A stretch of DNA of 64,000 nt from Saccostrea cucullata (GCF_032062105.1 NW_026929545.1:310001-374000); one strand, 5' to 3'. Counted from the first letter of the stretch, positions 3,245 to 64,000 are shown. Notes: a model not told the origin generated them from the sequence alone. A program made the numbers and translations.

Positions 3245-4307
3245 ATGATGATTTCATTTATTGTAGTGCTCATTTTGGGATCAGGTAAGGAAACATTCAA
3301 ATTTACTATTTGCTGATATTTTACGCAATTATGAGTAAATAAATTTTAAAGAAATAGATATTTTCTGTCTTTTAGCATTGGCTGATGAACCTGAGATCAC
3401 TAATCAACGCCAAATATCCAGCAAACCTGGATTCCATAACGAAAAGAATGCAACCTCAACCAAAGATAATAATGCGTCGCATCCCCCATTAAACTTGAAC
3501 AAAGATCCACTATCTACAAAATACCATTTTTTCCGGCCTCACATGAAAGGAGATATAATAAATCAATGGAGCCAGGATCCAATTACCTTTCGTCCACACA
3601 AAAAAGAAGAGAAATTGAATCATCTGAGCCGGGAACCAAATGTCTTTCATGCTCCTCTAGCTACAATGCTGGGTCACTTAATGAAGACGGGAAAGTTTGA
3701 TGTTATCGCCAATTTTGTTCGACTGGAACTAGTTCGAAAAGGGGAAAAGGGACGACACCATCAACGCCCTTTTATGCCACCACCGGATCAATTATTGTAT
3801 AATTACTACCCAAATCCATTGCAGGTATCTTTCCAACCCAAAAAATTAACTAACGAACCAATTAGAGAGCCTCAAGGTGCATTCGTCAAGCCATTACCTC
3901 AGTTCTCTGGTGCTCGTTCTGTACCCAGAGTTGAGGTTGCCCAGTTAATGTCCAAAGTATCTGCACCAGAAGGGACGTACGGTTTCATTATTCCAGAAAT
4001 TTCAGGGCAAAGAATTCCAAGCGAACAATGGTTGTGGTCACCAGTCTCCGCAGAGTCTGTAGGTCAACCACAGCTTATGACAAATTCTGCCTCAGCAGGA
4101 AGCAGCAATATCAGCAGGCGTCCTGTGCAGGTTCCATTTGAAACGATGTATCAGCAATACCAAAAAATGCAAGATGATTCAAAGATTACTGAAAAATCTT
4201 ATTCGCAACTTTCCAAAATTTACGAAATCTTGAACGCTTTGAAAACTATTAAGTCAGAAACTGGTGCTAAAGAGTTGCAAAACCGAAGCATATTGATGCC
4301 ACTTTAA
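3245..4307 (+). CDS. Cluster gene 1: secreted Pro/Gln/Ser-rich protein of unknown function, ~323 aa; exons 3245-3284, 3376-4307
   Basis: MMISFIVVLILGS|gtaagg...ttttag joins in frame to the 309-aa ORF, giving the signal peptide ...LGSALA-DEPE; C-terminal helix-like segment YSQLSKIYEILNALKTIKS. Confidence 0.8.
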
Positions 4308-4489: not shown

Positions 4490-5131
4490 TTACTTTCTCC
4501 CGAAAGTGCTTGGGTCAAAATTTCCAGCAGTCTGTGAGTTTGGATCAAAGTTTCCAGCAGCCATTGAATTTGGATTAAAGCTACCAGTTCCACCGGAACT
4601 TGGTTGGAAATTTCCGGTTCCACCAGCACTAGGTTGGAAACTTCCGGTTCCCCCCGCACTTGGTTGAAAGCTACCGACTTGTCCCCCACTGCTTACTCCA
4701 GTCTGGGTGTTAGACATGCCTCCAGGGTTAAAACTTCCAGCACTCATAGAGTTGGGGTTAAATGCAGATCCTCCATAACTGTGGGAATTTGGGTCATAAT
4801 TTCCAGCGGCCATGTGATTTGGGTCAAATCCTGGAGCGCCGGAAGGAGAGAAAAGTTGTCGCTTAACTGGGCCTATAATTGAAAAATAGTCATTTTCTCA
4901 CAATGCTTTTATTTTTTAGAACAGAAATTCATATTAAAAAAAAAACAAAAAAAAACCACCCAGCTTTTTATATACATTTGCATAGTAAAATCAATTATAA
5001 ATTAACACTTACAAAATTTATTTTGTTCAATTCATAATTGATTATAAAATCCTTTTCTAAATCATTATTAGATATGTACACTTACTTGAAAAGCACAGTG
5101 GAATTAAAACGAGAATAATTGCACCCTTCAT
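4490..5131 (-). CDS. Cluster gene 2: 142-aa secreted precursor with decapeptide F[DNQ]P repeats; exons 5131-5086, 4872-4490
   Basis: MKGAIILVLIPLCFS-SPVKR-QLFSPSGAPGFDPNHMAAGNYDPN...AGNFDPSTF-GRK*; GT-AG phase-1 intron in frame with ORF 4490..4813. Confidence 0.85.
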
Positions 5132-8560: not shown

Positions 8561-9873
8561 TTATTTCTTTCCAAATGCATTAGGATCAAAATTTCCAGAT
8601 CCTGAACCAAAACCATTAAGTGCGTTGGGGTCAAATGTTGGAGTCTGGAATCCGTTGGGGTCAAATGTGCCCATACCAGAATCTGGCGTACTGAAACCTC
8701 CACCTGCAATGAACAATCACAAAATAAAATTCTTCTATCCTTGCACCATATATAGAAGCAAAAAATTGCTACACTTCAGTAATAGAAACATTATTGTATA
8801 TTTACCAAACCCACTTCCACCAAAACCATGGTTGAGGGCATTTGGATCAAATGCAGCATGAGTTGACGCCATGTTCATTCCGAACCCCCCGCTGCCAAAA
8901 TTTTGGTTTACTGCATTGGGGTCAAAAGGTGCTATAAAACAAAAATCTGATAGATTACCAGACTCACCTGAGACAACGTCCTCTGATATGTATACGTTTT
9001 ATATGAAATTCGCCATTTTTTAGCTACAAATTAAGCTCTCGTCCTTCTCTTAAGGGACATGATTTGAACAAATCGGTTTCTACACTTCAAGACGTTTTGC
9101 TATCGATTACTGCCTCGTTCTTCCTAAATTTATTTTTTTACATTCATTCTTTCTATATATTCCAATGTAAAACCATTACCCTTTTATGACCCCATCCCGG
9201 CCTATCGCCTTGAATATGAACCTACACTCAGTAAAAGAAGAGATGTTCCTTAGTTAATATATTTAATTTTCCATCATCCATAGATGAATGGTGCAAAGTT
9301 TTGTGAAATTGGCAATGTGATTCTTGAGAAGACAATAAAAACGTGAAAAGTGAATATACGTGTACGTAAATGAATACAGATAAACGCTGGAAAATTGACA
9401 CCAAACAACTTCGTTTTAGCCTTCGGCGAAATCAATTACTTAAAAATATGGGGAAAATTCTTTTGATTGCATTACCGTTTTGTGCCAAATCTCAAAATAA
9501 GAATAGAGGATTGACACTGCATAGAGGATATTTTAAATACTGTACATAGATATTTTTTGGTTGAAATTCAACTTCCGATATTTCTATCCCAGAATAAAAG
9601 TCTATTAAATATACTGTTGTTGAAATGTAATAATGATATAAAAATAAGAGGGAAATAAATCAAATTACAAATTAATCAGATGTATACAATAATCAAAACT
9701 TAATTGAAATGTATAATATATTCTTTTCCAAGAATGACAAAAAAATTAGACTTTTATATATATTGCTGATAAAAAAAAAGCCATTGTTTCAAAAAAAAGT
9801 TTTGAAATACTGAATGATTACCCCCAAGACACAAAGAGATCAGGCCTAACAGAGCCAGGAATATTCCAGCCAT
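8561..9873 (-). CDS. Cluster gene 3: 106-aa secreted FDPN/Gly-rich precursor; exons 9873-9822, 8931-8806, 8703-8561
   Basis: MAGIFLALLGLISLCLG-APFDPNAVNQNFGSGGFG...FDPNALNHGFGG...FDPNGFQTPTFDPNALNGFGSGSGNFDPNAF-GKK*; both introns GT-AG, phase 1; reading frame absent from the ORF track. Confidence 0.85.
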
Positions 9874-12040: not shown

Positions 12041-15000
12041 ATGGATTTTATAAAAATCACCATTATATTTTTTTTAGTCACAGGTAAGAAAAATTTATTC
12101 AGAAATTTGGTAAATACTTCAAAGAAAACGTCAAAATGTTAATCTAGCTCAAATAAATTAGATTTCTTTTAGTAAAAATTTGACATATGTGTGATTATAT
12201 AGCTTGATTATCATGGAATGCACAGTAATAGCATTGGAAAAATTATATTTTGTCATAATATTATCATGATAATTTTTACAGAATACAGTTGCATTCCATT
12301 GCCCGGGTTAGAAGGATTGTCATCATCTGGTTCCAATGTATACAAATCACAAATACCAACCGACGAAAATATTCAAAACTTTATCAACGAAGGAGCTGAT
12401 TTCAACGCAATTTTAAATCCCAAAACGAAACAAAAATACCAGACTAAAGATTCAGCTTCTAGTATGCCGATTGTAGCGCAATCAAACTCGCTCCTGAACT
12501 TGTTGGAAAATATAAATGGAGTTCAACTTTTGAAATTATTAAATAACATGATAAAGTCACCAAACGGAGAACAAACCGTTTTAACCAACAACGAGATGAA
12601 ACCTCATGAAATGAATAAAAATCCCTCCGATGCAGGATCTGCGAACAATCAGGAGATTCATCGATATTCATCAATAAGTCCTAGCACTACAAGAATTCCC
12701 TCGAAAAACATTTCCCGAATTCCCTCTGATGCTAGTCGACAAGACTTACAAATAAAGAATATGCAAACAACTGGTTCCGGTGCAACAACTAATGGTGGTG
12801 ATGAGAGTACAGATGAGCATAAACTGTTACATTCATCTGGAACACATAAGCCGCTATCCTCTATACCCTCCGGCACAAATGAAGTGAATCTCCCTCAAGG
12901 CTTTACTGGTGGGATAAATTCTGGTGTAATGGGGGTTCAGGCACTGAATACCAACAACAACGCAGGCATGTATAACCTAGCTCAGCAGTACACCAACCCT
13001 ATGTCGATGTTAGCTGCAGGGATGGGTTCGACAGGAGGAGGAGGAAGCCTGGACAACGTGGAGTCTTCTCCAAACACAGTTGATAATGAGGCTCCACAAG
13101 TGGGAAAGACTCCTGGATTTGATCCCAATCGACTGATGAGCTCTTGGGCAAGTACAAATAACTTCAACCCCGGAGAGTATAACGTTGGACAAAACTTTAT
13201 ATCAACAGACGAATGGACAAAATATGCAAATCAACCCACTGGTTACACTGGTTTGATGCAACATATAACTCAAAACACAATGGGGAGCAACAGCAAAAAA
13301 GAAAATCAAGAAAAGCATACGGAAAACAAATTTCCACAAGAGCATTTTCAAACACAAGGATCGTCTCTGGACACATATCAAAATTCGGCATTGACTGCAA
13401 AAATGAATTTTGCTCCAAATAACATGATTATGCCTGTGTCAAATCCTCAGATGCCGAAATTACCCATAAAATTCAACTTTGATCCCGATAGTTTGAATTC
13501 ATTTACAGGATCCTTTCGGCCTGGGCAGTTTGCACCTGTACCTGCAGCTAATGTAGGGGAAACAGACTTTGGTACGAATGTTATAAAACATCATTTATCA
13601 GGCTTTCCAGATAAAATGCTTTCAAAGCACAATCAACAACTTCAAAATTTAAAGAAAACAGAATATCAGAAATCTCCCGAGATTCCTAAATTTAAACCAA
13701 GTAAAAATGCATTTGAAAATGTTCATATGGGGTTTAGTCCTGATTTTTTCGTAGGACCAATATATCAGTCTTCGAAGAAAATACCACACGTGAGTGATGC
13801 ACAAAGAGCAAAGTTAGAAAATCGAAGCGATCATAAATCTGTTAAAAGCAAACTCTTAGTTTTAAAAAGAGATCAGAATGTTGTTTCTACCACAAGTACC
13901 TCTAGATCAAATTTGACCGTTCAGACAACAACACCCTCTGCTTCTACTACCACAGATAAAACTATAACAACTCCTGATACCTCAAAGACTACATCCCTTG
14001 TAGACATTGGGGGATTCAACCCGGATGAAGTGAACAGACCGGTTATGTATAACCCAGGTATGTCACCAGGAATGAGTGTTGAATCATTCCAAAATTTTCA
14101 GTACAGTCCTCAACATCATAGAGTCAATTCAACTTCAACAGGTCAAACCTTTCAATTTACTGGTATGGGATTTTATCCATCAGAGGTCAATAATGCAAAG
14201 ATGAATTTTGATGTTAATTCGCAACTCGGTATCCCAGGTGGATCTTCATCGGTTAGTGGACAAACCTTTGGTGGAGGTTACGATCCCATTAAAACAAATA
14301 TTCTAGCCATCCAAAATCCATTCTCTACCAACAATCAAACTCAAGGGCCATCTTTCACGGCTGGTAAGGTGTCTGGATTTGGATCTGCCTTCATTGGTTC
14401 CTTCAATCCCAACAGTGTAAATGAAGGTATGATGAAGGATCTGTTGAACTCCCAGGCAAACAGTAACAGTAGTGGGAATTATTTCGGTATGGGAATGACT
14501 GGCTTTGACACGTCTGGATATGGAGGTAATTTCGACCCATCATCAGTAAACAATGCTGTTTTCAATCCAAATGAAGTAAACAATATTAAAATGCACTTTG
14601 ATCCAAGCGAGATGTTGGATAAAAACCCCGGATACGACACCGATAAAGCGCTGGCATATAAGTTTAATCCAAATAACATTAATAACATGCAGGCAAATTT
14701 TCAGCCATTATTTCTACAAAATAACAACGTCCATGAACCTACAAATAGCACTCATGATCCCAAAACCAATCCCTATAATGGCGCTAATTTCGTACCTGGT
14801 TTACTTGGAGGAGGAAGCAAAAATGAAATCCCAATCTTTAATCCAGCAACAGTGAACAATGCTCACATGAACTTTTCCCCAATCGGAGTGAATAACCTCC
14901 CAGACATGCCAAAAAATAACAGCAAGACGAGCAATACTACCAACTCATCAGATGAATCATATTCTTTCTTTAATCCTAATGACATGATTTCCAACATGAA

Positions 15001-15175
15001 TAACCATCCTGCCGGAATTATGAATTCTGTTGAAACACCAAACAAAGAGAGTCGGTCAGAGAATGCTTTTGTCCCAGGTTTACTAGCAGGTGGAGAGGGC
15101 ATTCCCGAAAGTGACAAAATAGAACGAAAAAACGAAAAAGAACAACCTCGAAGTTCGAGTTTGAGAGATATTTAA
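12041..15175 (+). CDS. Cluster gene 4: 978-aa secreted Asn/Ser/Pro/Met-rich protein with many F[DN]P motifs; exons 12041-12083, 12282-15175
   Basis: MDFIKITIIFFLVT|gtaag...tttacag|EYSC-IPLPG in frame with the 985-aa ORF; AATAAA at 15207-15212. Confidence 0.88.
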
Positions 15176-15693
15176 TGCCAACAATTCGATGTTTTTTTCC
15201 TTACTAAATAAAGCTATACTGAATATATATATATTCTCGATTACTTATTTGCTACGTTGAGGTTATGTTTGTAAGTATGGACAACCTATAATTCTAGCTG
15301 TATAAGTAATTTTTATACAGTTTAATTTTAAACACGAAAACATATCACCGAAATTTGAACAAGCAAGTCGTATTCTACGTTATCAGAAACAAAAGACAAC
15401 CAACAATAAATAGAAGTATGTGATGTGACAATATCATTGATATTTAAAACAAGAGAAAGAATTAACTCTGTCGTTTTGAGTTGGACTTATATCGTTCACC
15501 TGTCTAACAACTTCCGAGGACTATTTCTTATCGTTACCTCGTGAGCTACTGATGATAAGATTTAGTACCGTTTAATTAAACACAGGTCTTCAACGTTTGA
15601 CACAAATATATCGCATTGTTACATGATAATTACGGGAAACGAACGCATCTGAACCAACATAAGTGTAGACACATATCAGTCTCTCGTGGAATT

Positions 15694-18600
15694 ATGTGGC
15701 TGCCATTAATATTAACGGTAGCTTTAATTACCACTTGTGCTAGCCGTGACCTCAGAGGTAGAAAATTTATTAATTCTCTAATTCAAAGAAATTTGAATGA
15801 AATTGACTGATAGAATTTAAACATTTTAAAAATATTTTATTGAGTGCTTCGCTAGTGAATGTATGTAATTGATAATTTTGTTTATGTTTGCTTATTTTTT
15901 TCCTTTTAAAAATGTTTTCGAGATATTATTTGTATACAGTCCGCCAAACACAATCAGGGAGCACAAGCAGTGGAAGTACTTCCGGAAGTGGCTCTAGTTC
16001 CGCTTCAAGTCAGCCCAGTGGGGGATCTAGTTCCGGTTCTGGCCAGCAGCTTTCACAAAATATGCAGCCGCCATCATTTTTACTCAACCCTTCACAATTT
16101 ATGAGTGGCTCAAGTGCGTATGTATCAATATGAATGAGCAATTAAGTCTACCAGATAATTTTTTACAAAATAAAGATTGATACTAGCATAATTAAGACTT
16201 AAACAAGTAATGAAACACATTTATCTAAGGTGTTATTATATAATGGTGTTAAGATTTCTTTGGCAGATCCTCTCCATCAAATCCCGGTGCGGGTAGTGGA
16301 GGATCTAGTGGTTCGTCGAGTAGCGGATCCAGCAGTGGAAGTTCATCTTCACCTTCCTCTAGCAGTGGGAGCTCATCTTCTCCATCCTCTAGCAGTGGAA
16401 GCTCAACTTCATCTTCCTCTGGGAGTGGTAGCTCAACTATCCCAAAGTTTGATCCTAACAAAGTCAACCAAATTCAAGCAAGCTTTTTAGATCCGTCCAA
16501 ACTACAGCTTGGACCATCTGGCGGTGGTGGAGGTGGATTTGATCCCGACCAGTTTAATAGCATGTCATTTAATTTCTTTAATCCCGGTGCACTTTTAAGT
16601 GGCGGTGGAAATCAAGGACCATCCGGAAGGCGTAAGTTGTTTTTGTTTATCAGATGGTTTTACAAAAAGAATGTTCGTTTCATTTAATAGTAGTAATAAG
16701 AAAAGAACTTTTTTATTGAGCTTATTAAAAATTCACTGAATATGCCCTATAATAAGGATTCTTGTATTATTTTTTCATTTTGTAAGGGAGAAGACAAGCG
16801 GCAAGTTCTGGGGGTAGCAGCAGTAGCAGTGGAGGAGGTGGAGGTAGCAGTCCACCAAAGTATGATCCAAACAGTGTCAACAAACTCACATCAAACATGC
16901 TAGACCCATCCTCTTCTAAACTTGGAGCCAGTAACGGTGCCGCTGGTGGATTTGATCCAGATCAGTTTAATACAATGCAGTTCAACTTTTTCAACCCCAA
17001 CCAGATGTCTGGTGGTGGCGGCGGCGGTGGTGGTGGTAGCAGTGGAAGCAGCGGGAGTGCACCAAAGTTTGATCCAAACAGTGTCAACAAAATCCAGGCC
17101 AATATGCTGGACCCGTCTACTTCTAAGCTTGGAGCCAGTGGTGGAGCAGCTGGCGGATTTGATCCCGACCAGTTTAACACTATGTCCTTCAATTTCTTCA
17201 ATCCTCAAGCACAAGTTGGAAAGAGAAGTAAGAATTTGAGTTCGTATTCCTAAATTTTTAACAGAAATTACAGAGCTCACCTCAACTAATGTTGTCTTTA
17301 GAAAGGCAAAGTCCCATACTAAACTGATACTCTGGTAGTGTACATCCCAAGATGCAGCATCTATGCCAGTTTGGTTCAGGTTTGTCTTAATGTTATTTGG
17401 GAATGAACCTGCTCTTTAAACTTGAACCTGGTCCCTTTTCTGGAAAAAAAGTAGCTCAAATTCAGAAACTATATCAACCTTGATAGTGTGCATCAATAAA
17501 TGCGACTTTATTGTAATATTGGTTAGCATAGGGCTTGTAGTCACTTTGCAAATAAACTACTCCGAAAACTATAGAATGGTCACTCATCTGGATAACTGAG
17601 GTCAAAAACAACGCTTTAGCAAGTCCGGTAGTACGCATCCTTAGATGCGTCATCCTAGTTTTGTCAGCATAGGGCTTTTTGCAATTGTTATTTGAAAATA
17701 AGACCTGCTCCAAAACCATTAATTTATAGCTATCTAGAAATGTACAGATCCAGCATCCAAAACAATCCACTTATCTGGAAAATATAGGATAGATCCAGCA
17801 TCCAAAGCAAACCAGGTAGTGTTTATCCTTGGATGTATCATCCATGTAAATTTGGTCAATATAGATCTAATAAAAACTTGGAAATTAGATCTGATCCAAA
17901 AACTTTCACCTTGTCACTCATCCGGAAAATGTGGGTCAGGTCAAGCATCCGAAGCAAGACTCATAGTGTACAGTTTTAGATGTATCATTTGTGTAAATTT
18001 GACCCAAATAAGGTTTATAGTTACTTGGGAATGAGACCTGATCCAAAAATATTCACCTGCTCCAAAAACATTAACCTGGTCCTTATTTAGCTGAAATTGT
18101 AACATCTGAAACCTTGACTGGTACAATGAAACATTCTACAAACATCTTCAATGCATCTCAGCTCAATTCAGGGCATAAAAGAATTTGATAAGAAATCTGC
18201 TCCAAAAAACTTTAACATAAGACGCCGACGGTTTTACATTAGCTTCTCCAACTTCGATGAGGTGAGCTTATTATTCGCTGAGGTGAGCTTAAAAAAGAGA
18301 ACATTGAGCAATTTATATTTCGTCCATAGGCCTCTTAAAACGTCAGAGCTCTCCATCTGGCCCGAGCAGTAGTGGTGGAAGCAGCGGAAGTAGCAGTGGT
18401 GGAAGCAGTCCACCAAAGTATGATCCAAACAGTGTCAACAAACTCACATCAAACATGCTAGACCCATCCTCTTCTAAACTTGGAGCCAGTAACGGTGCCG
18501 CTGGTGGATTTGATCCAGATCAGTTTAATACAATGCAGTTCAACTTTTTCAACCCCACCCAGATGTCCGGTGGTGGAGGCGGCGGTGGTGGTGGTAGCAG

Positions 18601-20320
18601 TGGAAGCAGCGGGAGTGCACCAAAGTTTGATCCAAACAGTGTCAACAAAATCCAGGCCAATATGCTGGACCCGTCTACTTCTAAGCTTGGAGCCAGTGGT
18701 GGAGCAGCTGGCGGATTTGATCCCGACCAGTTTAACACTATGTCCTTCAATTTCTTCAATCCTCAAGCACAAGTTGGAAAAAGAAGTAAGAGTTATAGTT
18801 CGTATTCCTTAAATTGTTAAAAGAGATTACAGAGCTCACCTCAACTAATGTTGTCCTTTAGAAAGGCAAGACTAACCATACTAAACTCATTATCCTTGGA
18901 TGCATCATCCATGCAAGTTTGGTCAATATAGATCTAATAGTTACTTTGAAATTAGGTCTGCTCCAAAAACTTCCACCTTGTCACTCATCTGGAAATGTGG
19001 GTCAGGTCAAGCATCCGAAGCAAGCATGGTGGTGTACATCCCTAGATGTATCATTTGTGTACATTTGGTCAAACTAAGGTTAATACATATGGCTACTTGA
19101 AAAATGCAACCTGATCCAGACTTAAACCTGCTCAAAAAGCATAAAACAAATCCATATTTTGCTGAAACTGCAACATCTGAAACCTTGACTGGTGCAATGA
19201 AACATACTACAAACATCTCCAATACATCTCAGCTCAATTTAGGACATAAAAGTACTTGATAAGAAATCTGCTCCAAAAACTCTAACATAGGACCTCGTTG
19301 TAGTGAGCTAATAATGATTTGAACTTATAAAAAAGACAATATTGAGCTATCTATATTTCTTCCACAGGTCTCTTAAAACGTCAGAGCTCTCCATCTGGCC
19401 CGAGCAGTAGTGGTGGAAGCAGCAGTGGTGGAAGCAGTCCACCAAAGTATGATCCAAACAGTGTCAACAAACTCACATCAAACATGTTAGACCCATCCTC
19501 TTCTAAACTTGGAGCCAGTAACGGCGCGGCTGGTGGATTTGATCCAGATCAGTTTAATACCATGCAGTTCAACTTTTTCAACCCGAACCAAATGTCTGGT
19601 GGCGGTGGTGGTGGTAGTGGCAGTGGTGGAAGCAGCGGGAGTGCACCAAAGTTTGATCCAAACAGTGTCAACAAAATCCAGGCCAATATGTTGGACCCGT
19701 CTACTTCTAAGCTTGGAGCCAGTGGTGGAGCAGCTGGCGGATTTGATCCTGACCAGTTTAACACTATGTCCTTCAATTTCTTCAATCCTCAGGCACAAGT
19801 TGGAAAGAGAAGTAAGTACTTTGTTCACATTTTGAAAATGATTTTAGTTTTATTTAAATTGTTTCTCTGATGTTTATACTGATGTTCTTTTTATTAAGAT
19901 CTTCGAAGACGTCAGACCTCACAAACATCAACTGGTTCCAGTGGGTCAACATCTGGATCATCAACCAGCGGCGGTTCAAGCAGTAGTTCATCTTCCGGTG
20001 GCGCTTCTCAGATGATGAGCCCAAGCATGTTTATCAACCCCAGCAATTTTTTAATGGGAGGAAACTCTGGAAGCAGTAGTGGAGGAAGTTCCCCTTCGTC
20101 AACTTCTTCCTCCTCCCCTTCCACCTCCTCCTCTTCTGGTGGAAGTGCACAACAACCTTCCTTTGATCCAAACAAAGTTAATCAAATTCAGTCCAGTTTT
20201 CTGGATCCTTCAAAGGCACAGCTCGGTTCGGGTGGCTCAGCGTCAGGAGGATTTGACCCTGATGCAGTCAATACTCTGTCATTTAACTTTTTCAATCCTA
20301 AAAATCTTCTTGGACGTTAA
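15694..20320 (+). CDS. Cluster gene 5: 789-aa secreted Ser/Gly-rich polyprotein with eight copies of a ~45-aa FDPN...FNFFNP module; exons 15694-15757, 15940-16117, 16267-16631, 16787-17227, 18330-18785, 19368-19811, 19899-20320
   Basis: Signal peptide MWLPLILTVALITTCAS; all six introns GT-AG and frame-compatible (2370 nt total); junction sequences G-RRRR-Q, G-KR-SLL-KR-Q (twice), G-KR-NL-RRR-Q; ends LL-GR*. Confidence 0.88.
16787..19811 (+). repeat. Tandem triplication of an exon plus flanking intron within gene 5
   Basis: Exons 16787-17227, 18330-18785 and 19368-19811 are near-identical; introns 17228-18329 and 18786-19367 share both ends (attacagagctcacctcaactaatgttgtc; aacatctgaaaccttgactgg...). 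Confidence 0.92.
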
Positions 20321-23671: not shown

Positions 23672-26600
23672 ATGCTGCCAAATTTCCTTTTATTAACTTT
23701 GATACATTCTATAGCAGCCGTACCCGTTCGGTATGTTTTGGATGTTCAGAAACTTTTTTCTGGTAAGTGTAAATCGTCTCTTGCAACTTTTCAAAAAAAT
23801 TGATGTTATAAAAGAATGAAGTTGAAGATTTGAAGAATGATTGTTGAATGGTAGATGAATTGAATAATTAGATGGTACTTTTAATTTTATTTGAATATTT
23901 TTTGTTTTATATCATCAATCAATCAAAGCTGGATCGGTCCAAAGAAGACAAACATTTGATCCTAACGCCATGATGTTTGCAGGCGGAACTTCCTCCTCCG
24001 GTTCCACATCCAGTAACTCCCAGTACATAGGATCCTTCAACCCTAACCAAATGATGAGCAGCATGGGAAGCGGAATGAATATGTTTAATCCTGGTTCTCA
24101 ATCCGGTGGACAGACTTCGTCACAATCATCAGGTTCCACGGCAACGTTTGATCCTACAAAACTCAACAACCAGTTAAGCAGCTCGTCTGGATCCCAGACC
24201 AGTGGAATGGGTGGGGGATTTAATCCAAATCAGATGATGGGTGGTGGAGGTAGTGGAACATCCACACAACAATCAAGCTCTGGCGGAACTCAGTCCGGAA
24301 GTACAAGTGGAACAAGCAGCTCAGGAACTGGGACCTCGGCATTTGGTGGTAGTTTTAATCCAAACCAACAAGGTGGAGCTCAATTCAACAATCAACTAAG
24401 TAGCTCTACTGGGTCCCAGACAAGTGGTATGGGTGGGGGATTTAATCCAAATCAGATGATGGGCGGTGGAGGTAGTGGAACATCGAGTGGAACTCAGTCC
24501 GGAAGTACCAGTGGTACAAGCAGCTCAGGAACCTCAGCATTTGGTGGTAGCTTTAATTCAAATCAGCAAGGTGGTTCTCAGTTCACAAACCCCATGTCAC
24601 AAATGGGAGGCGGGCAGGGAGGGGCATCATCATCCCTCGTTCCAAATTATAACCCCAATAACGCTGCAGTAAATATGGCAGGCGGGTATGATCCAAATGC
24701 AGCTAACTCCGGACAGGGGACTGGAGGCAACACCCCAACTTTCACCAACGGAATGGGAATGAATGCTAAGCAGCAGTCGATGGGAGGAGGTTCGATGCCA
24801 AGTGGAAATGGCATGACACAGCAATCGGGAAGTGGAAGCGCCATGCTACAAAGTGGTACGAGTAGTGGAGGTGCCTCGTCATTTGGAAGTTCAACAAGCT
24901 CAGGAAGCAGTTCCACTGGAAGCAATACACCTGGAAGTGGAAGTGCGTCCTCCTTTGGAAGTTCATCTGGAACTGGATCAGGCACTTCTTCAAGCGGTAG
25001 TGCTTCTTCTTTTGGTAGTCCAAGTGCATCAGCGAGTACTTCCCAAGGAGGAGCAAATTCATTTGGAAGTCCTACAAACACACAATCTGGGTCTTCAAGT
25101 GGAGGCAGCAGTTCAGGTGCCTCTGCATTTGGTACTCCTATGTCCGGAAGTAGCTCTAGCAGCGGAACATCACAGACTTCCGGTGGGACTTCGATGGCTG
25201 GATCTTTTGATCCTATTAAAACAAATGTCGAAACAACTCAGTCCGGATTCAATCCCTTAAGTCCAGTTTTAGGTATGCTGGAAATATCGATACTCTCACT
25301 TTACACTAAAGTTATTAAAATGAAAAAACGAAAATTTAATCACCGTTGCTCCATTTGGTCTAAAAAATATTTATTCTTCTTTTTTAATAGGAAAGGTACA
25401 AAACTTCATGGGACCCCAGGGTGGTTGTATGTATACCGTTTATCTGTATGTGTCCTAACAGTAATCACATACCTTCTGAATTCCTTTTGGAGACATACTC
25501 TAATTAGTATATAACTATTTTGCTATATTTAAGCATCTGGTGGCACGTTTGATCCTGGTGCAGTTAACACACAAATGGCAGTACAGGGTGCTAGTTTGAA
25601 CATGTTCGGTGGTAAGTACATGTAGAATACACCCAAATACTAATGAACAGTGATAAAAGAACATAGTCTCTGAATGTATAGAATGTTTTATACCATCAGG
25701 CGCTGGAGGTCGGGATGCAAATAAAATGGATGCTAATTCATTAATGGGTGGAGCTCCTGGAATGATGGGTGGGGCGAATCAGGTCAACGGTGGGTCCAGT
25801 GGTGGTAGCGCCGGGGCAAACATGTTTAATCCAATGGGATCAATGATGAGCGGTTCATCCAGTGGCGCTGGTGGGACTTCCGGTCCAATGAATATGATGA
25901 ATACAATGGGATCATCTGTAACAGGACGAACACTCAATTCGGGTGACGTAAAAACTTTTTTATGCTTAAAAAAACCAAACCAAACAAAACAAAAAATTTA
26001 AAGAATAATAGGGCATGAAATACTTATATCTTGACCACGTATTACACTTAATTAACAGGAGGTAGCTCCGTGTCATCTTCCAATCCCATGATGCCTGGTG
26101 GACTTCCACCAGGCGGAAATCCCCTGGATCCAATGGGGGCAATGTCTGGTAATGTTAACTGAATTATCAAATCTTCTCACAAAAACCTAGAAGGAGTGCT
26201 TTTGCTTTAACGCCATTGTATCATTAACCAAAAAATAACTTGCTTTGCATTGTGTTTCAAACGCTTTGTGTTCTCAAGTATTGGTTTTAAAGAAGTGGCT
26301 CGTAAAAAAAACAACATTCAATCATCGCATCGCTATGGAAAGCTAAAGGGTTCAATTTCTAAATTAAAATTCTATATCACTGTTCGCATTTTGTAAAGTC
26401 CACCTTACCTGAAATTTAAGGTGTTGGAATTTTCGAATTTTTGCTTTTTCTGAGAATAGGTTTTTTTCAAAATCATTAAAGCTTATATAGCCTCATTGAA
26501 TTTAATTGAAGAGTATTAAAACCAAGTTAAGAAATGCTTGTTGGCATTTGTAATGTACTTGTCAATCATCAGCTTTCTATCCAAGTCTGTCTTTATGCTA

Positions 26601-26999
26601 TTAGGTGGCGGGGACATTTCTAAGTTTTCTGGAGGTACCAGTCTCGTGGATCCGAAAGGATTTATGAATGGTAAAAATTATCGTTCTTTCTTTATCATCG
26701 AAGAGATGATTATTTTTTCTGAATTAAACATTTCCATTGAGTGGAAAAGTACATCCGTTTTATCATTTTTTTTTAAAGTGTTAGAAAAAAGGGTTATGGC
26801 AAACGATGATCAGGTAGCGTTTTGACATTAGCAACTGTAGAATTTAATAGAGAGAATTAACTTCATAGAAGGTCATATTTTTATATCCGAGAATTGCCAA
26901 CCTATAATTATACCTTTACTCTACCAGACTGAAGCTAAAAATGTATTGTTAATTAAAGATTATTCCTATGATTGAGATAAGGGGACACGAGGGGGGGGG

Positions 27000-27070
<71 letters not shown>

Positions 27071-27907
27071 GAAGTTAGTAACCTTCAAACCTTGATTTTT
27101 TCACAGGAGGAGGATTAACCGGGACCCAGTCAAATCAGTTCTCAATGCTAGGTAAGCGCTTTTTATCTATTTTCATTTTTGCCTTACAAAATATTGTTCG
27201 AAAACGCATGTCTCATTAATTTTTTCCCATTTTTTTTAATACAGGAAAACGTGCAATTAGAGGTAATCTTTATTGTTTTTTCTAACGTTGATTGGAAGCC
27301 AAATGAGGAAAGTTTCGAAATGTATTGTGATAAAATTCCCCTGAAACTTATCAATTTGAGCAGAATTGCAAGATTTATTTAGAATCAAAAATATTTACCA
27401 TCATGTGATTCTTAATTTTGCGAGGACCACCTACTTAGTTTTAGTTTAGTTTAAACCATTTATTTATTTTTAAAAATACAAGCATAGTTTTACAATACAG
27501 ATATTACGTTCGGCTCACACACGATTCGGAAACAAGTTTCAAAAACTTAACTTTATTTGTCTGCCTGTAATTTATTGAAGTAGTGATTTCTTGCTGAGTA
27601 GCACAGAATAATACGGTTTAAAGAAGTTATAATTGCAAGAAAATAAGAATTTGAATACTGCGATACACGAATGCACTTTCACTTGATCGGTACTATTTCT
27701 TTAAAAATTAAATGTATTATTTTCATTTTTTAAAGGTGTGGTCAAGGTATGTTCATTTTTTTAATTTCATATGTTGAATTTTAATACATGTCCCTAAAAT
27801 TTTCAACCGCACTAAAAATAAAATGATCTGAATTTCAGAGAGCAGAAGACAAATACGTGGACTTGTTCTTGTCGCTGTTGGATATTCTTGAGAAAATGTC
27901 AAGATGA
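23672..27907 (+). CDS. Cluster gene 6: 684-aa secreted Gly/Ser/Met-rich precursor with F[DN]PN motifs; exons 23672-23762, 23929-25272, 25534-25611, 25700-25942, 26059-26148, 26605-26670, 27107-27151, 27245-27262, 27736-27746, 27839-27907
   Basis: Signal MLPNFLLLTLIHSIAA; VQRR-QTFDPNAMM; C-terminus FSML-G-KR-AIRGVV-KR-AEDKYVDLFLSLLDILEKMSR*; ten exons in frame (2055 nt); the micro-exons are the least certain part. Confidence 0.8.
27004..27067. repeat. (AT)n microsatellite
   Basis: About 32 uninterrupted AT dinucleotides in a gene 6 intron. Confidence 0.95.
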
Positions 27908-30029: not shown

Positions 30030-33000
30030 ATGGCGGTTAAATTTGTGTTGATTGGACTGCTTTGTTTAAAGGTTTCGGAGGGTAAGTACGAAGATGTATT
30101 TTTGAGAGGTTGGAAAATACCTACAAATCGTACGTCTTCACTTAAATTCCTTCTATTTGTTGATTTAACTTACTTTTCCAAATATGAAAATAAAGTACAA
30201 ATATAGGACAAGGCTGGGGGTCATGATGCAAAATGCTGATACCAAAAATGTCTTGTCAGAAGGAATATGCACAAAAGCTATGTGAAGGTTCTAGCACTAA
30301 TAGTTAAAAAGTTAAAGCCAAGGTTAAAGTTTATTAAAATTTTGCAAAAGTAGGTCAAACTGCAAAGTCAAGAGGTCAAATATATTTGTACCCAGCGAAA
30401 GATCTTGACGACACACGGAATATATATGTAAAATATATATATACATGTATATAAATACATGTACCTACATGTAAAACTCTTTTTAGATTTTAACAGTAGG
30501 CGTTAAAATGTATTTCATATAAATCAATTTCAAATTCCAAAACAGGACTGCCTATGACCTATAACCCCGCCTTTTATAAGGGCCTGAATATACCAGATTA
30601 TAACCCGAACAGCATTCCCTTTGTCAACTACAACCCTATGAAAGAACAAAAGCCGAGACCCTTCTCCGAGTTTCAGTCCATCACAACATCTGTTCCAGAG
30701 GCTCCTAAAATGAATGTGTTCGGTAACCCTGGAAATGCTGGCATCAAGTTCGATCCTAAAATAGTAACACCTTCACCATTCGACAATTTGAAGTTTGATC
30801 CAAATAACCGAAACTTTTTAAAAGGTTTCAATCCCAACTCTTTTGCAGACAAAGGTAAATTTTTCTGGCATTTGTTTTTACTTTTTTCACATTGTCAAAT
30901 TTGTTTGAGATTAGATGCTACAATCTACCTTTCTTTTCTCAGTAGAGCCATTTCAGGTAGTGCAAGTAACAGAATCAACGGCCGGGCATGACTGGGACGG
31001 CGGATGGCCAGGTCTGTAGGTTATCCAACTAATATAGACGTTTCACTTAAGATATGGGATTGTAGTTCACAGATACAGAAACAATAAAAAGGTGGATGTA
31101 CTCGTACACTCAGGCACTGCCAAATTTCACCATTTAAATCTAGAAAAATCAGGGTATAACAATCTAGAGTTAAAATACAGTACTATAATTGGAAACGAAA
31201 AATTCTTCTTAATATTATCGTGTACGTAAAACACAGATCACTATTGTTACAGATCACTAAACGGATACACCATGGAATAATATCCAAAGCTGCTGACATC
31301 TAGCTTAAAATTTCCCCGTTTTTATTACATTTTGCAGCTGGCAAAAGTAATGGAATGGTTCAAACAAAAGCAAACGAGAAAACAGAATCAGGAGCAAACT
31401 CCTCTGGAAACAGCGGAAAAAATGTCTTCGGTAGCTCAGGAAAATCCTGGGATGGAAGCTGGCCAGAGGGTAGTTAGAACGTCATATCACAACATAATAC
31501 AGATAGTCCGCAGATAAATATTTCATTTCAAGCAAGCATGAAAATGATTGCATTTTAAAAATTGCAGGGGATGTAAAAGAATTTTCCTCAAAAGCTACAG
31601 AATCATGGAATTCAGCGGTAGGCGCCAAACAAGTCAATAAAAACTGGCAAGGTAACCGACCTCCCACGTACTTGAAACGATCTCGACTGAGTACTAATAT
31701 TTTTTATATTAATAGTCTCATATTCTTTATCATTTCAGATAATTCAGGAGATTTCTCAAATAAAGCTACAGATTCATGGAACAAAGCACTGAATCAGGGT
31801 AAAAATCAAGGTAAATCAAAACAATCAGAACTCGTTTGACTATTCATTGAATAGTGCAAATTTGTGTGTCGGAAAAATTGAGATCATTGAACACAGATTT
31901 TTTTCCCCCGGAGAGTTGCATTTCTGCAGCTATTCATTGAATAGTTATACAAGGTATATTTCATTTCAAACGAGTATGTTATATTAAATTGCACGGGATA
32001 TAAAAGAATATTTGCATCCACTGAATATTATTTATTTTTTCTCCAGAAAATATCAGATAAAAATATCGAACAGGGATACATTATTGCAGCTATTACACGG
32101 AATATATGGTTTTATATGTCCCAGATTCTTTATCATTTCAGATAATTCAGGAGATTTCTCAAATAAAGCTACAGATTCATGGAACGAAGCACTGAATCAG
32201 GATAAAAATAAAGGTAAATCGCATATTTAATATCATACATAAATATACTAAAATGATGTGGATACGTTGTACAAGATTTTGTATTCACACCAAACAAGCA
32301 AATACCGGTACGTGACAATATAATGATTACCCCAAATTACAACAATGCTTACATATGAGTCATCTTAATCTCAGCTGAGATTTGTCTGGATTTTGATAAT
32401 CAGACTGGACAAGTCAGTGCAAATATCGAACAAGTAAAATTTAAGCTGAAATTTTCTGAGAACTTCTCTACATTGGAAGTGAAAAGGGTTTAAATGCATA
32501 ATTTTTTTTTGACCAATTAAATGAAAAAAAAAACCTTGGTTCAATTGTTGTATAGCAAAATATTTGGAATGAAGTTTCATTGATGTAATAAGATGTGACA
32601 TGAAAAATTATCGTCATTGGATTTCCAGCACATTGATACAAAAGTACCCCCTTGATTTTAATACTTTGTCTTCTATCGCTTTTAAAATACTAGTATAAAG
32701 AGGACATAAACAAGGACCCCTGCAAACTCCAGATTTGCCTTGGAATCAAGTGCTTAGGAACACTCCATGGTCAATTTCAGTCAAAAACAAAACAAAGGTC
32801 TGGCAATCTGCATGAAAAAAAAAGTCTGCCAAAATATGACCAATGATGGGTTATATCTCTTAACAAGGTCATAGTAATGACCATAGAATTTAAAGGAGAT
32901 TGCTGAAATCTATGTAACATCAGCTTATAAAATGATGCCAAATGCCATGAACCGATGACCTTTTAGGTTTCCACTTGCTAAAACTTTCCAACAATGTACT

Positions 33001-33094
33001 CCTCATTCTATTTTCAGGAAACAAAAATGGACTGGAAGAAGTGGATGAGATCATTCAGAGCTTGATAGCGGCACTAGAAAAGCTGTATTCATAA
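30030..33094 (+). CDS. Cluster gene 7: 288-aa secreted protein with [FY][DN]P motifs and Trp-containing exon repeats; exons 30030-30081, 30546-30854, 30943-31011, 31338-31469, 31568-31651, 31739-31810, 32142-32213, 33018-33094
   Basis: Signal MAVKFVLIGLLCLKVSEG-LP; YNPA, YNPN, FDPK, FDPN, FNPN; all introns phase-1 GT-AG; ends LEEVDEIIQSLIAALEKLYS*. Confidence 0.8.
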
Positions 33095-63032: not shown

Positions 63033-64000
63033 CTTAGTGTAGTCTACTTGCAAGCCACATTATATTATAATCTAAAACTGTATTGAAGTAGCAAATTTGA
63101 GAGTAACAGAAATTGCTATCTTTATTAACCAAGGTAATAATGTTAATTGAAGTCAAAAACAGATATAAAGAATTATGTACCTTAGTGTAGTCTACTTGAG
63201 TGCCAAGTTATATTGAAATCATACCAAAACTGTAGGAGGAATAGCATTTTGAAAGAATTTCACAGAAATTTCTATTTTTGGTAACAACGCCAACACCGTT
63301 CGTCGAAATCAAAAACCGATATACAGAATTATGTATCTTAGTGTAGTCTACTTGTGTGCCAAGTTATATTGAAATCAGACTAAATTTGTAGGAGTAGCAT
63401 TTTGAAAGAATTTCACAGAAATTTCTATTTTTAGTAACAATGCCAACACCGTTCGTTGAAATCAAAAACCGATATACAGAATTATGTATCTTAGTGTAGT
63501 CTACTTGTGTGCCAAGTTATATTGAAGTTAGACCAAAACTGTAGGAGGTGTAGCATTTGGAAAGAATTTCACAGAAATTTTTATTTTTAGTAACAACGCC
63601 AACATCGTTCGTCGAAATCAAAAACCGATACACAGAATTATGTAACTTAGTGTAGTCTATTTGTTTGCCAAGTTATATTGAAATCATACCAAAACTGTAG
63701 GAGTAGCAGCATTTTGAAAGAATTTCACAGAAATTTCTATTTTTAGTAACAACGCCAACATCGTTCATTGAAATCAAAAACCGATACACAGAATTATGTA
63801 TCTTATTGTAGTCTACTTGTGTGCCAAGTTATATTGAAGTCAGACCAAAACTGTAGGAGGAGTAGCATTTTGAAAGAATTTCACAGAAATTTCTATTTTT
63901 AGTAACAACGCCAAAACCGTTCCTCGAAATCAAAAACCGATACACAGAATTATGTATCTTAGTGTAATCTACTTATATGCCAAGTTATATTGAAATCAGA
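63033..64000. repeat. ~156-bp tandem satellite array, at least 6 copies, runs off the window
   Basis: cttagtgtagtctacttg or a close variant at 63033, 63181, 63337, 63490, 63646, 63802, 63958. Confidence 0.92.

Follow-up and report, generated by a model that had tools for sequence, protein, structure and literature searches.

A candidate secreted polyprotein with repeated, putatively capped units in a gene cluster of the bivalve Saccostrea cucullata

Results

Gene cluster around the precursor gene

The window, i.e. the whole 64,000-nucleotide stretch of Saccostrea cucullata DNA that was analysed (GCF_032062105.1 NW_026929545.1:310001-374000; without N), holds genes 1 to 7, of which gene 5 (15694-20320, + strand) is treated in detail below. 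Gene 1 (3245-4307, + strand) encodes 323 aa with a signal-like start and without FDP motifs; its syntenic counterparts have 303 aa in S. echinata and 325 aa in Magallana gigas. Gene 2 (4490-5131, - strand, 142 aa) follows the same grammar as gene 5 in a single unit, with a KR/Q start (the slash marks a predicted cut) and a Phe-Gly-Arg-Lys-stop end, and is kept in both of these species. Gene 3 (8561-9873, - strand, 106 aa) ends in Phe-Gly-Lys-Lys-stop and has no Gln start. Gene 4 (12041-15175, + strand, 978 aa) carries four elements resembling one half of the module described below, is devoid of capping signals and serves as syntenic anchor. Downstream of gene 5, gene 6 (23672-27891, + strand) is a predicted model of ~675 aa with an RR/Q start, a long Ser/Gly/Met chain including Met/Gly-rich stretches, one half-module element and a Leu-Gly-Lys-Arg end, and a short terminal peptide after RR/Q may also come from this model (27245-27891). 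Gene 7 (30030-33094, + strand, ~265 aa) consists of an exon rich in [FY][DN]P and, after it, duplicated 72-nt phase 1-1 exons that encode a repeat containing Trp, again without capping signals. In addition, a paralogue is located ~8 kb upstream of the window (L030:2369-3930, G000:C11682): it is Met/Gly/Ser-rich, starts with RR/S, and its main chain ends in I-G-RKR (Gly-Arg-Lys-Arg) followed by three residues. Its opening resembles the module-bearing Potamilus sequences P0026 and P0028, and the paralogue itself has no module.

[FY][DN]P motifs abound in each of genes 2 to 7, and these six clustered genes lie far above shuffled sequences in this respect. S. echinata and M. gigas share the gene order, which in Pinctada and scallop is kept in part. 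A Gly-basic amidation signal is common to four neighbours of gene 5, namely genes 2, 3 and 6 and the upstream paralogue, so that across the cluster amidation signals are more widespread than the Gln start. Further along the window, positions 46132-46515 (- strand) resemble the gene for mitochondrial ribosomal protein S12, an unrelated housekeeping neighbour, and satellite arrays with periods of 166 and 156 occupy positions 59253-60546 and 63149-64000.

Structure and transcription of gene 5

Gene 5 is an open frame of 789 aa from seven GT..AG-joined exons, with intron phases 1, 2, 1, 1, 1 and 1 in order. Exon 1 (15694-15757) encodes a hydrophobic signal-like peptide and the start of a short pro-region; the hydrophobic N-terminus spans ~17 aa in six models, and similar N-termini are present in S. 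echinata, M. gigas, Pinctada and two further loci. Exon 2 (15940-16117) contributes the end of the pro-region (R23), Gln24 (15945-15947) and the first half of unit 1, while exon 3 (16267-16631) supplies the remainder of this unit with one module, Gly201 (16625-16627) and the first Arg of linker 1. The following three exons are all phase 1-1 and all end in Gly-Lys-Arg after a unit with two modules: exon 4 (16787-17227) starts with the remainder of RRRR and encodes unit 2, and exons 5 (18330-18785) and 6 (19368-19811) start with SLLKR and encode units 3 and 4, exon 5 being the extra cassette of this assembly. Finally, exon 7 (19899-20320) comprises NLRRR, unit 5 with one module and Gly-Arg-stop (20312-20320).

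In the spliced frame, the putative mature units measure 177, 141, 144, 140 and 133 aa and are separated by G-RRRR/Q, twice G-KR-SLL-KR/Q, and G-KR-NL-RRR/Q; RVR/Q precedes the first unit and G-R-stop closes the last. This reproduces exactly the five-unit layout, linkers and unit lengths of the initial annotation, which had also placed four introns within the linkers: introns 3 to 6 indeed map to the four internal linkers. Intron 1 falls into the pro-region and intron 2 (phase 2) into unit 1. All 16 Arg of the protein are found in the pro-region, the linkers or the C-terminus, no unit contains a dibasic pair and the Lys inside the units are all single. The units have a net charge of -1 to -2, 37-56% Ser+Gly, no Cys and at most one Tyr.

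Evidence for splicing comes from contigs of four RNA studies of a close relative, which were placed on the gene 5 exons. The exon 1-exon 2 joint is present in these contigs, 16117>16267 occurs in four runs, 16631>16787 in three and 19811>19899 in one, and three runs show a repeat exon whose end is spliced to the beginning of an SLLKR exon (19813>18335 plus CTT). Hence, four of the six proposed junctions are confirmed, and for introns 4 and 5 the contigs confirm the type, the joined copies being ambiguous because the contigs collapse repeats. The runs themselves were only presumed to be RNA, but these spliced joints show that gene 5 is transcribed in the close relative. A donor at 16114 for intron 2 was dropped, as it breaks the frame, and the donor at 16118 is the RNA-confirmed one. 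The contigs reach back 270 nt or more from the ATG (15424-15693), and intron 1 is retained in two runs. Intron 4 (17228-18329, 1102 nt) is homologous to intron 5 (18786-19367, 582 nt), with 73-84% identity over aligned stretches. Both contain a ~147-nt repeat (17300-18210 and 18830-19290) with very high contig depth, which is a lineage-specific insertion of a dispersed repeat, since the short S. echinata introns lack it.

Orthologues and conservation of the linker signals

Orthologous loci were reached via a match from the first search with an exon, which gave 67% in the freshwater mussel Potamilus streckersoni, and via the syntenic upstream gene, which is 83% identical to an S. echinata protein. 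Besides the present locus, the comparison includes S. echinata, M. gigas, Pinctada imbricata, Mizuhopecten yessoensis, Potamilus and the ENA assemblies L007 and L012, tentatively regarded as mussel-like and clam-like, respectively. The M. gigas locus is on OY970750.1, directly downstream of XP_034326064. All orthologue models are hand-built with splice windows chosen by eye. Those of S. echinata (630 aa) and of M. gigas (611 aa) have the same length and ends as the corresponding NCBI gene calls; the others are partly circular, and the scallop model leaves out the 5' part of the gene, for which no in-frame model was obtained.

When Arg clusters were defined without reference to Gly or Gln in these eight bivalve genomes, 24 of 25 were preceded by Gly (background 0.22) and 23 of 25 followed by Gln (background 0.064), one of the two Gln misses being an artefact of the clustering rule. 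Restricting the count to distinct linker strings leaves Gly before 20/21 and Gln after 19/21, and even for four independent linkers the chance expectation is ~4e-8; the flanking of Arg clusters by Gly and Gln is therefore more than chance. The spacers, in contrast, vary widely between orthologues (G-KR/Q, G-RR-AIA-RR/Q, G-KR-FV-RR/Q, G-KR-VIH-KR/Q), and fixed flanks together with divergent spacers are the expected result of selection on cleavage, amidation and cyclisation. All complete models end in G, GR or GRR, with bare-Gly ends in Pinctada, Potamilus and L012 and GR or GRR in oysters and scallop. The residues before the amide-donor Gly differ (PS, QV, LL, MT, FV, QL). Among database variants, P0044 and P0045 end in Gly-Ser-Arg and Gly-Asn-Arg and the others in Gly-Lys-Arg, and two paralogues begin with Ser or Ala instead of Gln. 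P0036 was set aside as a chance repeat match and P0030 as an error-ridden copy.

The layout and the 48-aa module are kept from oysters to freshwater mussels, i.e. in pteriomorphs and palaeoheterodonts, and the lineages compared here diverged in the early Palaeozoic. These data are best explained by a gene that is single-copy, occurs bivalve-wide and encodes a secreted precursor. None of the relatives found bears a non-bivalve name, with most matches carrying no name at all, and the family is only putatively restricted to bivalves. Wherever names are given, the family is annotated solely as hypothetical. In two public gene calls (L013:16149-24096, 1469 aa with EF-hands, and L014:14069-22331, 1435 aa), the orthologue seems to be merged with genes that lie downstream of it, which may be a reason why the family went overlooked.

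The 48-aa module

A 48-aa module occurs once or twice in each unit and in this genome is confined to gene 5 (+ strand; 16442-16585, 16855-16998, 17062-17205, 18413-18556, 18620-18763, 19442-19585, 19646-19789 and 20156-20299). It is free of gaps in all 31 copies of the first seven models, while the tethers around it vary freely; two database matches have a 4-aa insertion in its middle linker. The module is built from two 16-aa halves of the type F-D-P-x-x-hydrophobic-N...[DN]-P around a Gly-rich linker, and the halves score 35, compared to a maximum of 28 after column shuffling. AlphaFold with a 38-row alignment predicts a short helix after each F-D-P (pLDDT 79, pTM 0.51), and the single-sequence fold of unit 2 is of low confidence (pLDDT 53). 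These models are suggestive of a small fold, albeit not proof of one. Searches of Pfam, PDB sequences, ESM Atlas features and folds, run exon by exon or by module so that full-length kin may escape, returned no usable match. In scallop, two units of 61 and 56 aa are almost the module alone, which argues that the Ser/Gly tether is dispensable.

Cassette duplication and unit number

Across orthologues, a phase-1 intron is located in 21 of 22 internal linkers (18/19 plus 3/3). As only phase 1-1 exons cut in the linkers duplicate as whole cassettes, ordinary duplication of symmetric exons suffices to account for these introns, and the idea in the initial annotation that they had been placed there is probably not correct. 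Likewise, its proposal that each duplicated exon adds one full mature unit holds for units 2 to 5 and not for unit 1, which a conserved phase-2 intron splits over two exons.

Five units occur only in this assembly, with four in both S. echinata and M. gigas. Exon 5 combines an exon 6-like start with modules identical to those of exon 4 (0 of 288 bases differ), which fits an origin by unequal crossover followed by gene conversion. The identical modules, the four units of the other two species and the collapsed repeats in the RNA contigs also leave room for an assembly merge of two haplotypes with a true number of four, a scenario compatible with any function of the products. Such a merge is less likely than crossover and conversion, and is altogether a slim prospect: introns 4 and 5 differ in length and are only partly alike, the mixed composition of exon 5 is as from unequal crossover, and copies also resemble each other within M. 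gigas. There, 7-8 of 144 bases distinguish the two copies, compared to 22-34 between species, which can reflect either concerted evolution or independent duplication.

Discussion

Predicted processing of the precursor

The standard prohormone pathway employs furin or PC1/PC2-type convertases, carboxypeptidase E, PAM and glutaminyl cyclase. Applied to gene 5, removal of the signal would be followed by convertase cleavage behind the final Arg of every basic site, the basic residues would be trimmed by carboxypeptidase E, PAM would convert the exposed Gly to an amide and glutaminyl cyclase would close the new Gln. The output would be five nearly neutral chains of 13-17 kDa with both ends blocked, together with tiny spacers, each chain presenting one or two modules on a flexible Ser/Gly tether, and the number of units would shift through duplication of phase 1-1 exons. 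Judged from the sequence, it is highly probable that the precursor is processed to capped units. The polyprotein reading of the initial annotation gains from the comparison, in that the Gly-basic and Arg-Gln signals persist despite changing spacers and that three distant orthologues end in bare Gly, and it is from such signals that we infer processing. Convertase P-domains and copper monooxygenase domains are present in the genome, but as in any animal, and thus do not discriminate.

Alternatively, the precursor may be cut partly or left uncapped, either by furin-type cleavage without amidation and cyclisation or as an intact chain whose basic patches are otherwise used. The single Arg of the first site points in this direction, as do the Ser or Ala starts of two paralogues and the missing dibasic pair of P0044 and P0045, which counts against processing in general. 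This alternative leaves the Gly before nearly every basic cluster and the bare-Gly ends of distant orthologues unexplained, and we consider it quite unlikely.

Relation to known precursors and candidate functions

Neuropeptide and prohormone precursors start with a signal peptide, where gene 5 has a signal-like hydrophobic N-terminus. Gene 5 shares with them basic sites that bound the products, repeated units, and a Gly amide donor and Gln at new N-termini that are conserved beyond chance. In contrast to these precursors, with their short products and conserved amidated tails, the gene 5 products are low-complexity chains of 133-177 aa with variable tails, and the neighbours of the gene in the cluster are low-complexity secreted genes. 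Gene 5 fits none of the precursors that PMC8398477 describes as mollusc-specific. In ants, hymenoptaecin precursors release several Gly-rich domains at RR sites with the repeats in one exon, and the bee apidaecin precursor has one exon per peptide (PMC3415428). Gene 5 resembles the former in its repeated Gly-rich domains flanked by RR and the latter in the layout of units 2 to 5, but its repeats are spread over several exons, it lacks the EAEP spacer and any sequence match, and every unit bears an amide signal. Spider acanthoscurrins are similar to the gene 5 units in size (130-132 aa; PMC8610171); with their slightly negative net charge, the gene 5 units differ from the cationic mature chains of Gly-rich antimicrobial proteins. 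Nematode polyprotein allergens and profilaggrin also consist of a variable number of tandem units of ~130 aa or more that are cut at basic sites; such units are not known to be pGlu- and amide-capped. Gene 5 is free of Cys and has no Pfam match, and no Pfam, PDB or fold match to the profile or the helical lipid-binding unit of the allergen family was obtained. With bivalve shell and ligament proteins (LMP, NU-5 and others; PMC7591529), the cluster shares secretion, low complexity, restriction to bivalves as far as names are available, and the Met/Gly-rich stretches of gene 6. However, the gene 5 protein has 3% Met, no acidic tract and almost no Tyr, and thus no Met-, Asp/Glu- or Tyr-rich tract as in shell or ligament matrix proteins. 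Its motifs were not found in the text supplements of PMC7591529 or in a further shell/ligament supplement, the main text of a larval-settlement paper holds no matching accession, and the searchable literature, which excludes subscription journals and figures where a prior description is possible, yielded nothing relevant for motifs or accessions.

Our best explanation is that gene 5 encodes a processed, capped and self-assembling or gel-forming secreted material, to which we assign a probability of about 0.45. The modules would act as association elements, and together with the Phe-Asp-Pro/Phe-Asn-Pro-rich products encoded by the neighbouring genes the capped chains would assemble into a gel, coat or matrix outside the cells; cleavage would time the assembly and the caps would resist exopeptidases. 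Function is the weakest step of this explanation: provided that processing occurs, a material role is slightly favoured, since the whole cluster repeatedly shows aromatic motifs carried by flexible tethers of variable sequence, one capped product has ~600 aa and the amidated tails are unconserved. An obvious cross-linking chemistry is missing, which counts against it, and a strictly gap-free module would suit a ligand no less than a subunit of a polymer. The main rival is a role as signals, i.e. hormones, neuropeptides or water-borne pheromones, with the module binding a receptor and the tandem copies amplifying the output. pGlu, amide and dibasic sites are the classic mark of neuropeptides, the module shows strong conservation and makes up nearly the whole unit in scallop, and there is a single locus per genome. 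Still, signalling seems unlikely for products of 133-177 aa, or ~600 aa in gene 6, with long variable Ser/Gly tracts and with pre-amide residues that, unlike in most amidated ligands, are unconserved; moreover, the text supplements of bivalve neuropeptide papers, figures lying outside the search, do not contain gene 5 motifs. Defence or mucus functions take the third place. The multi-unit layout of the ant and bee precursors and the size of acanthoscurrins speak for them, but the units are slightly acidic and Arg-free instead of cationic and match no such protein, and deep conservation at a single locus sets gene 5 apart from most antimicrobial families, so that we regard this possibility as improbable.

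Returning to the secreted material, a further-reaching proposal, tentative and rather doubtful at present, is that, in an ancient gene cluster of bivalves, all steps of neuropeptide maturation serve to make a structural material from doubly capped chains, with the pseudo-symmetric module driving assembly after cleavage. If true, this would represent an undescribed class of biomaterial proteins and a non-signalling use of amidation. The processing logic and the duplication of exon cassettes are already known; the unnamed module, the conserved capping grammar and the size of the products, far above that of neuropeptides, are apparently undescribed. The gene 5 sequence supplies exact and cheap targets for mass spectrometry. 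Structural products would imply a material role for amidation and pGlu capping, while signalling products would reveal an overlooked family of hormones or pheromones in farmed bivalves.
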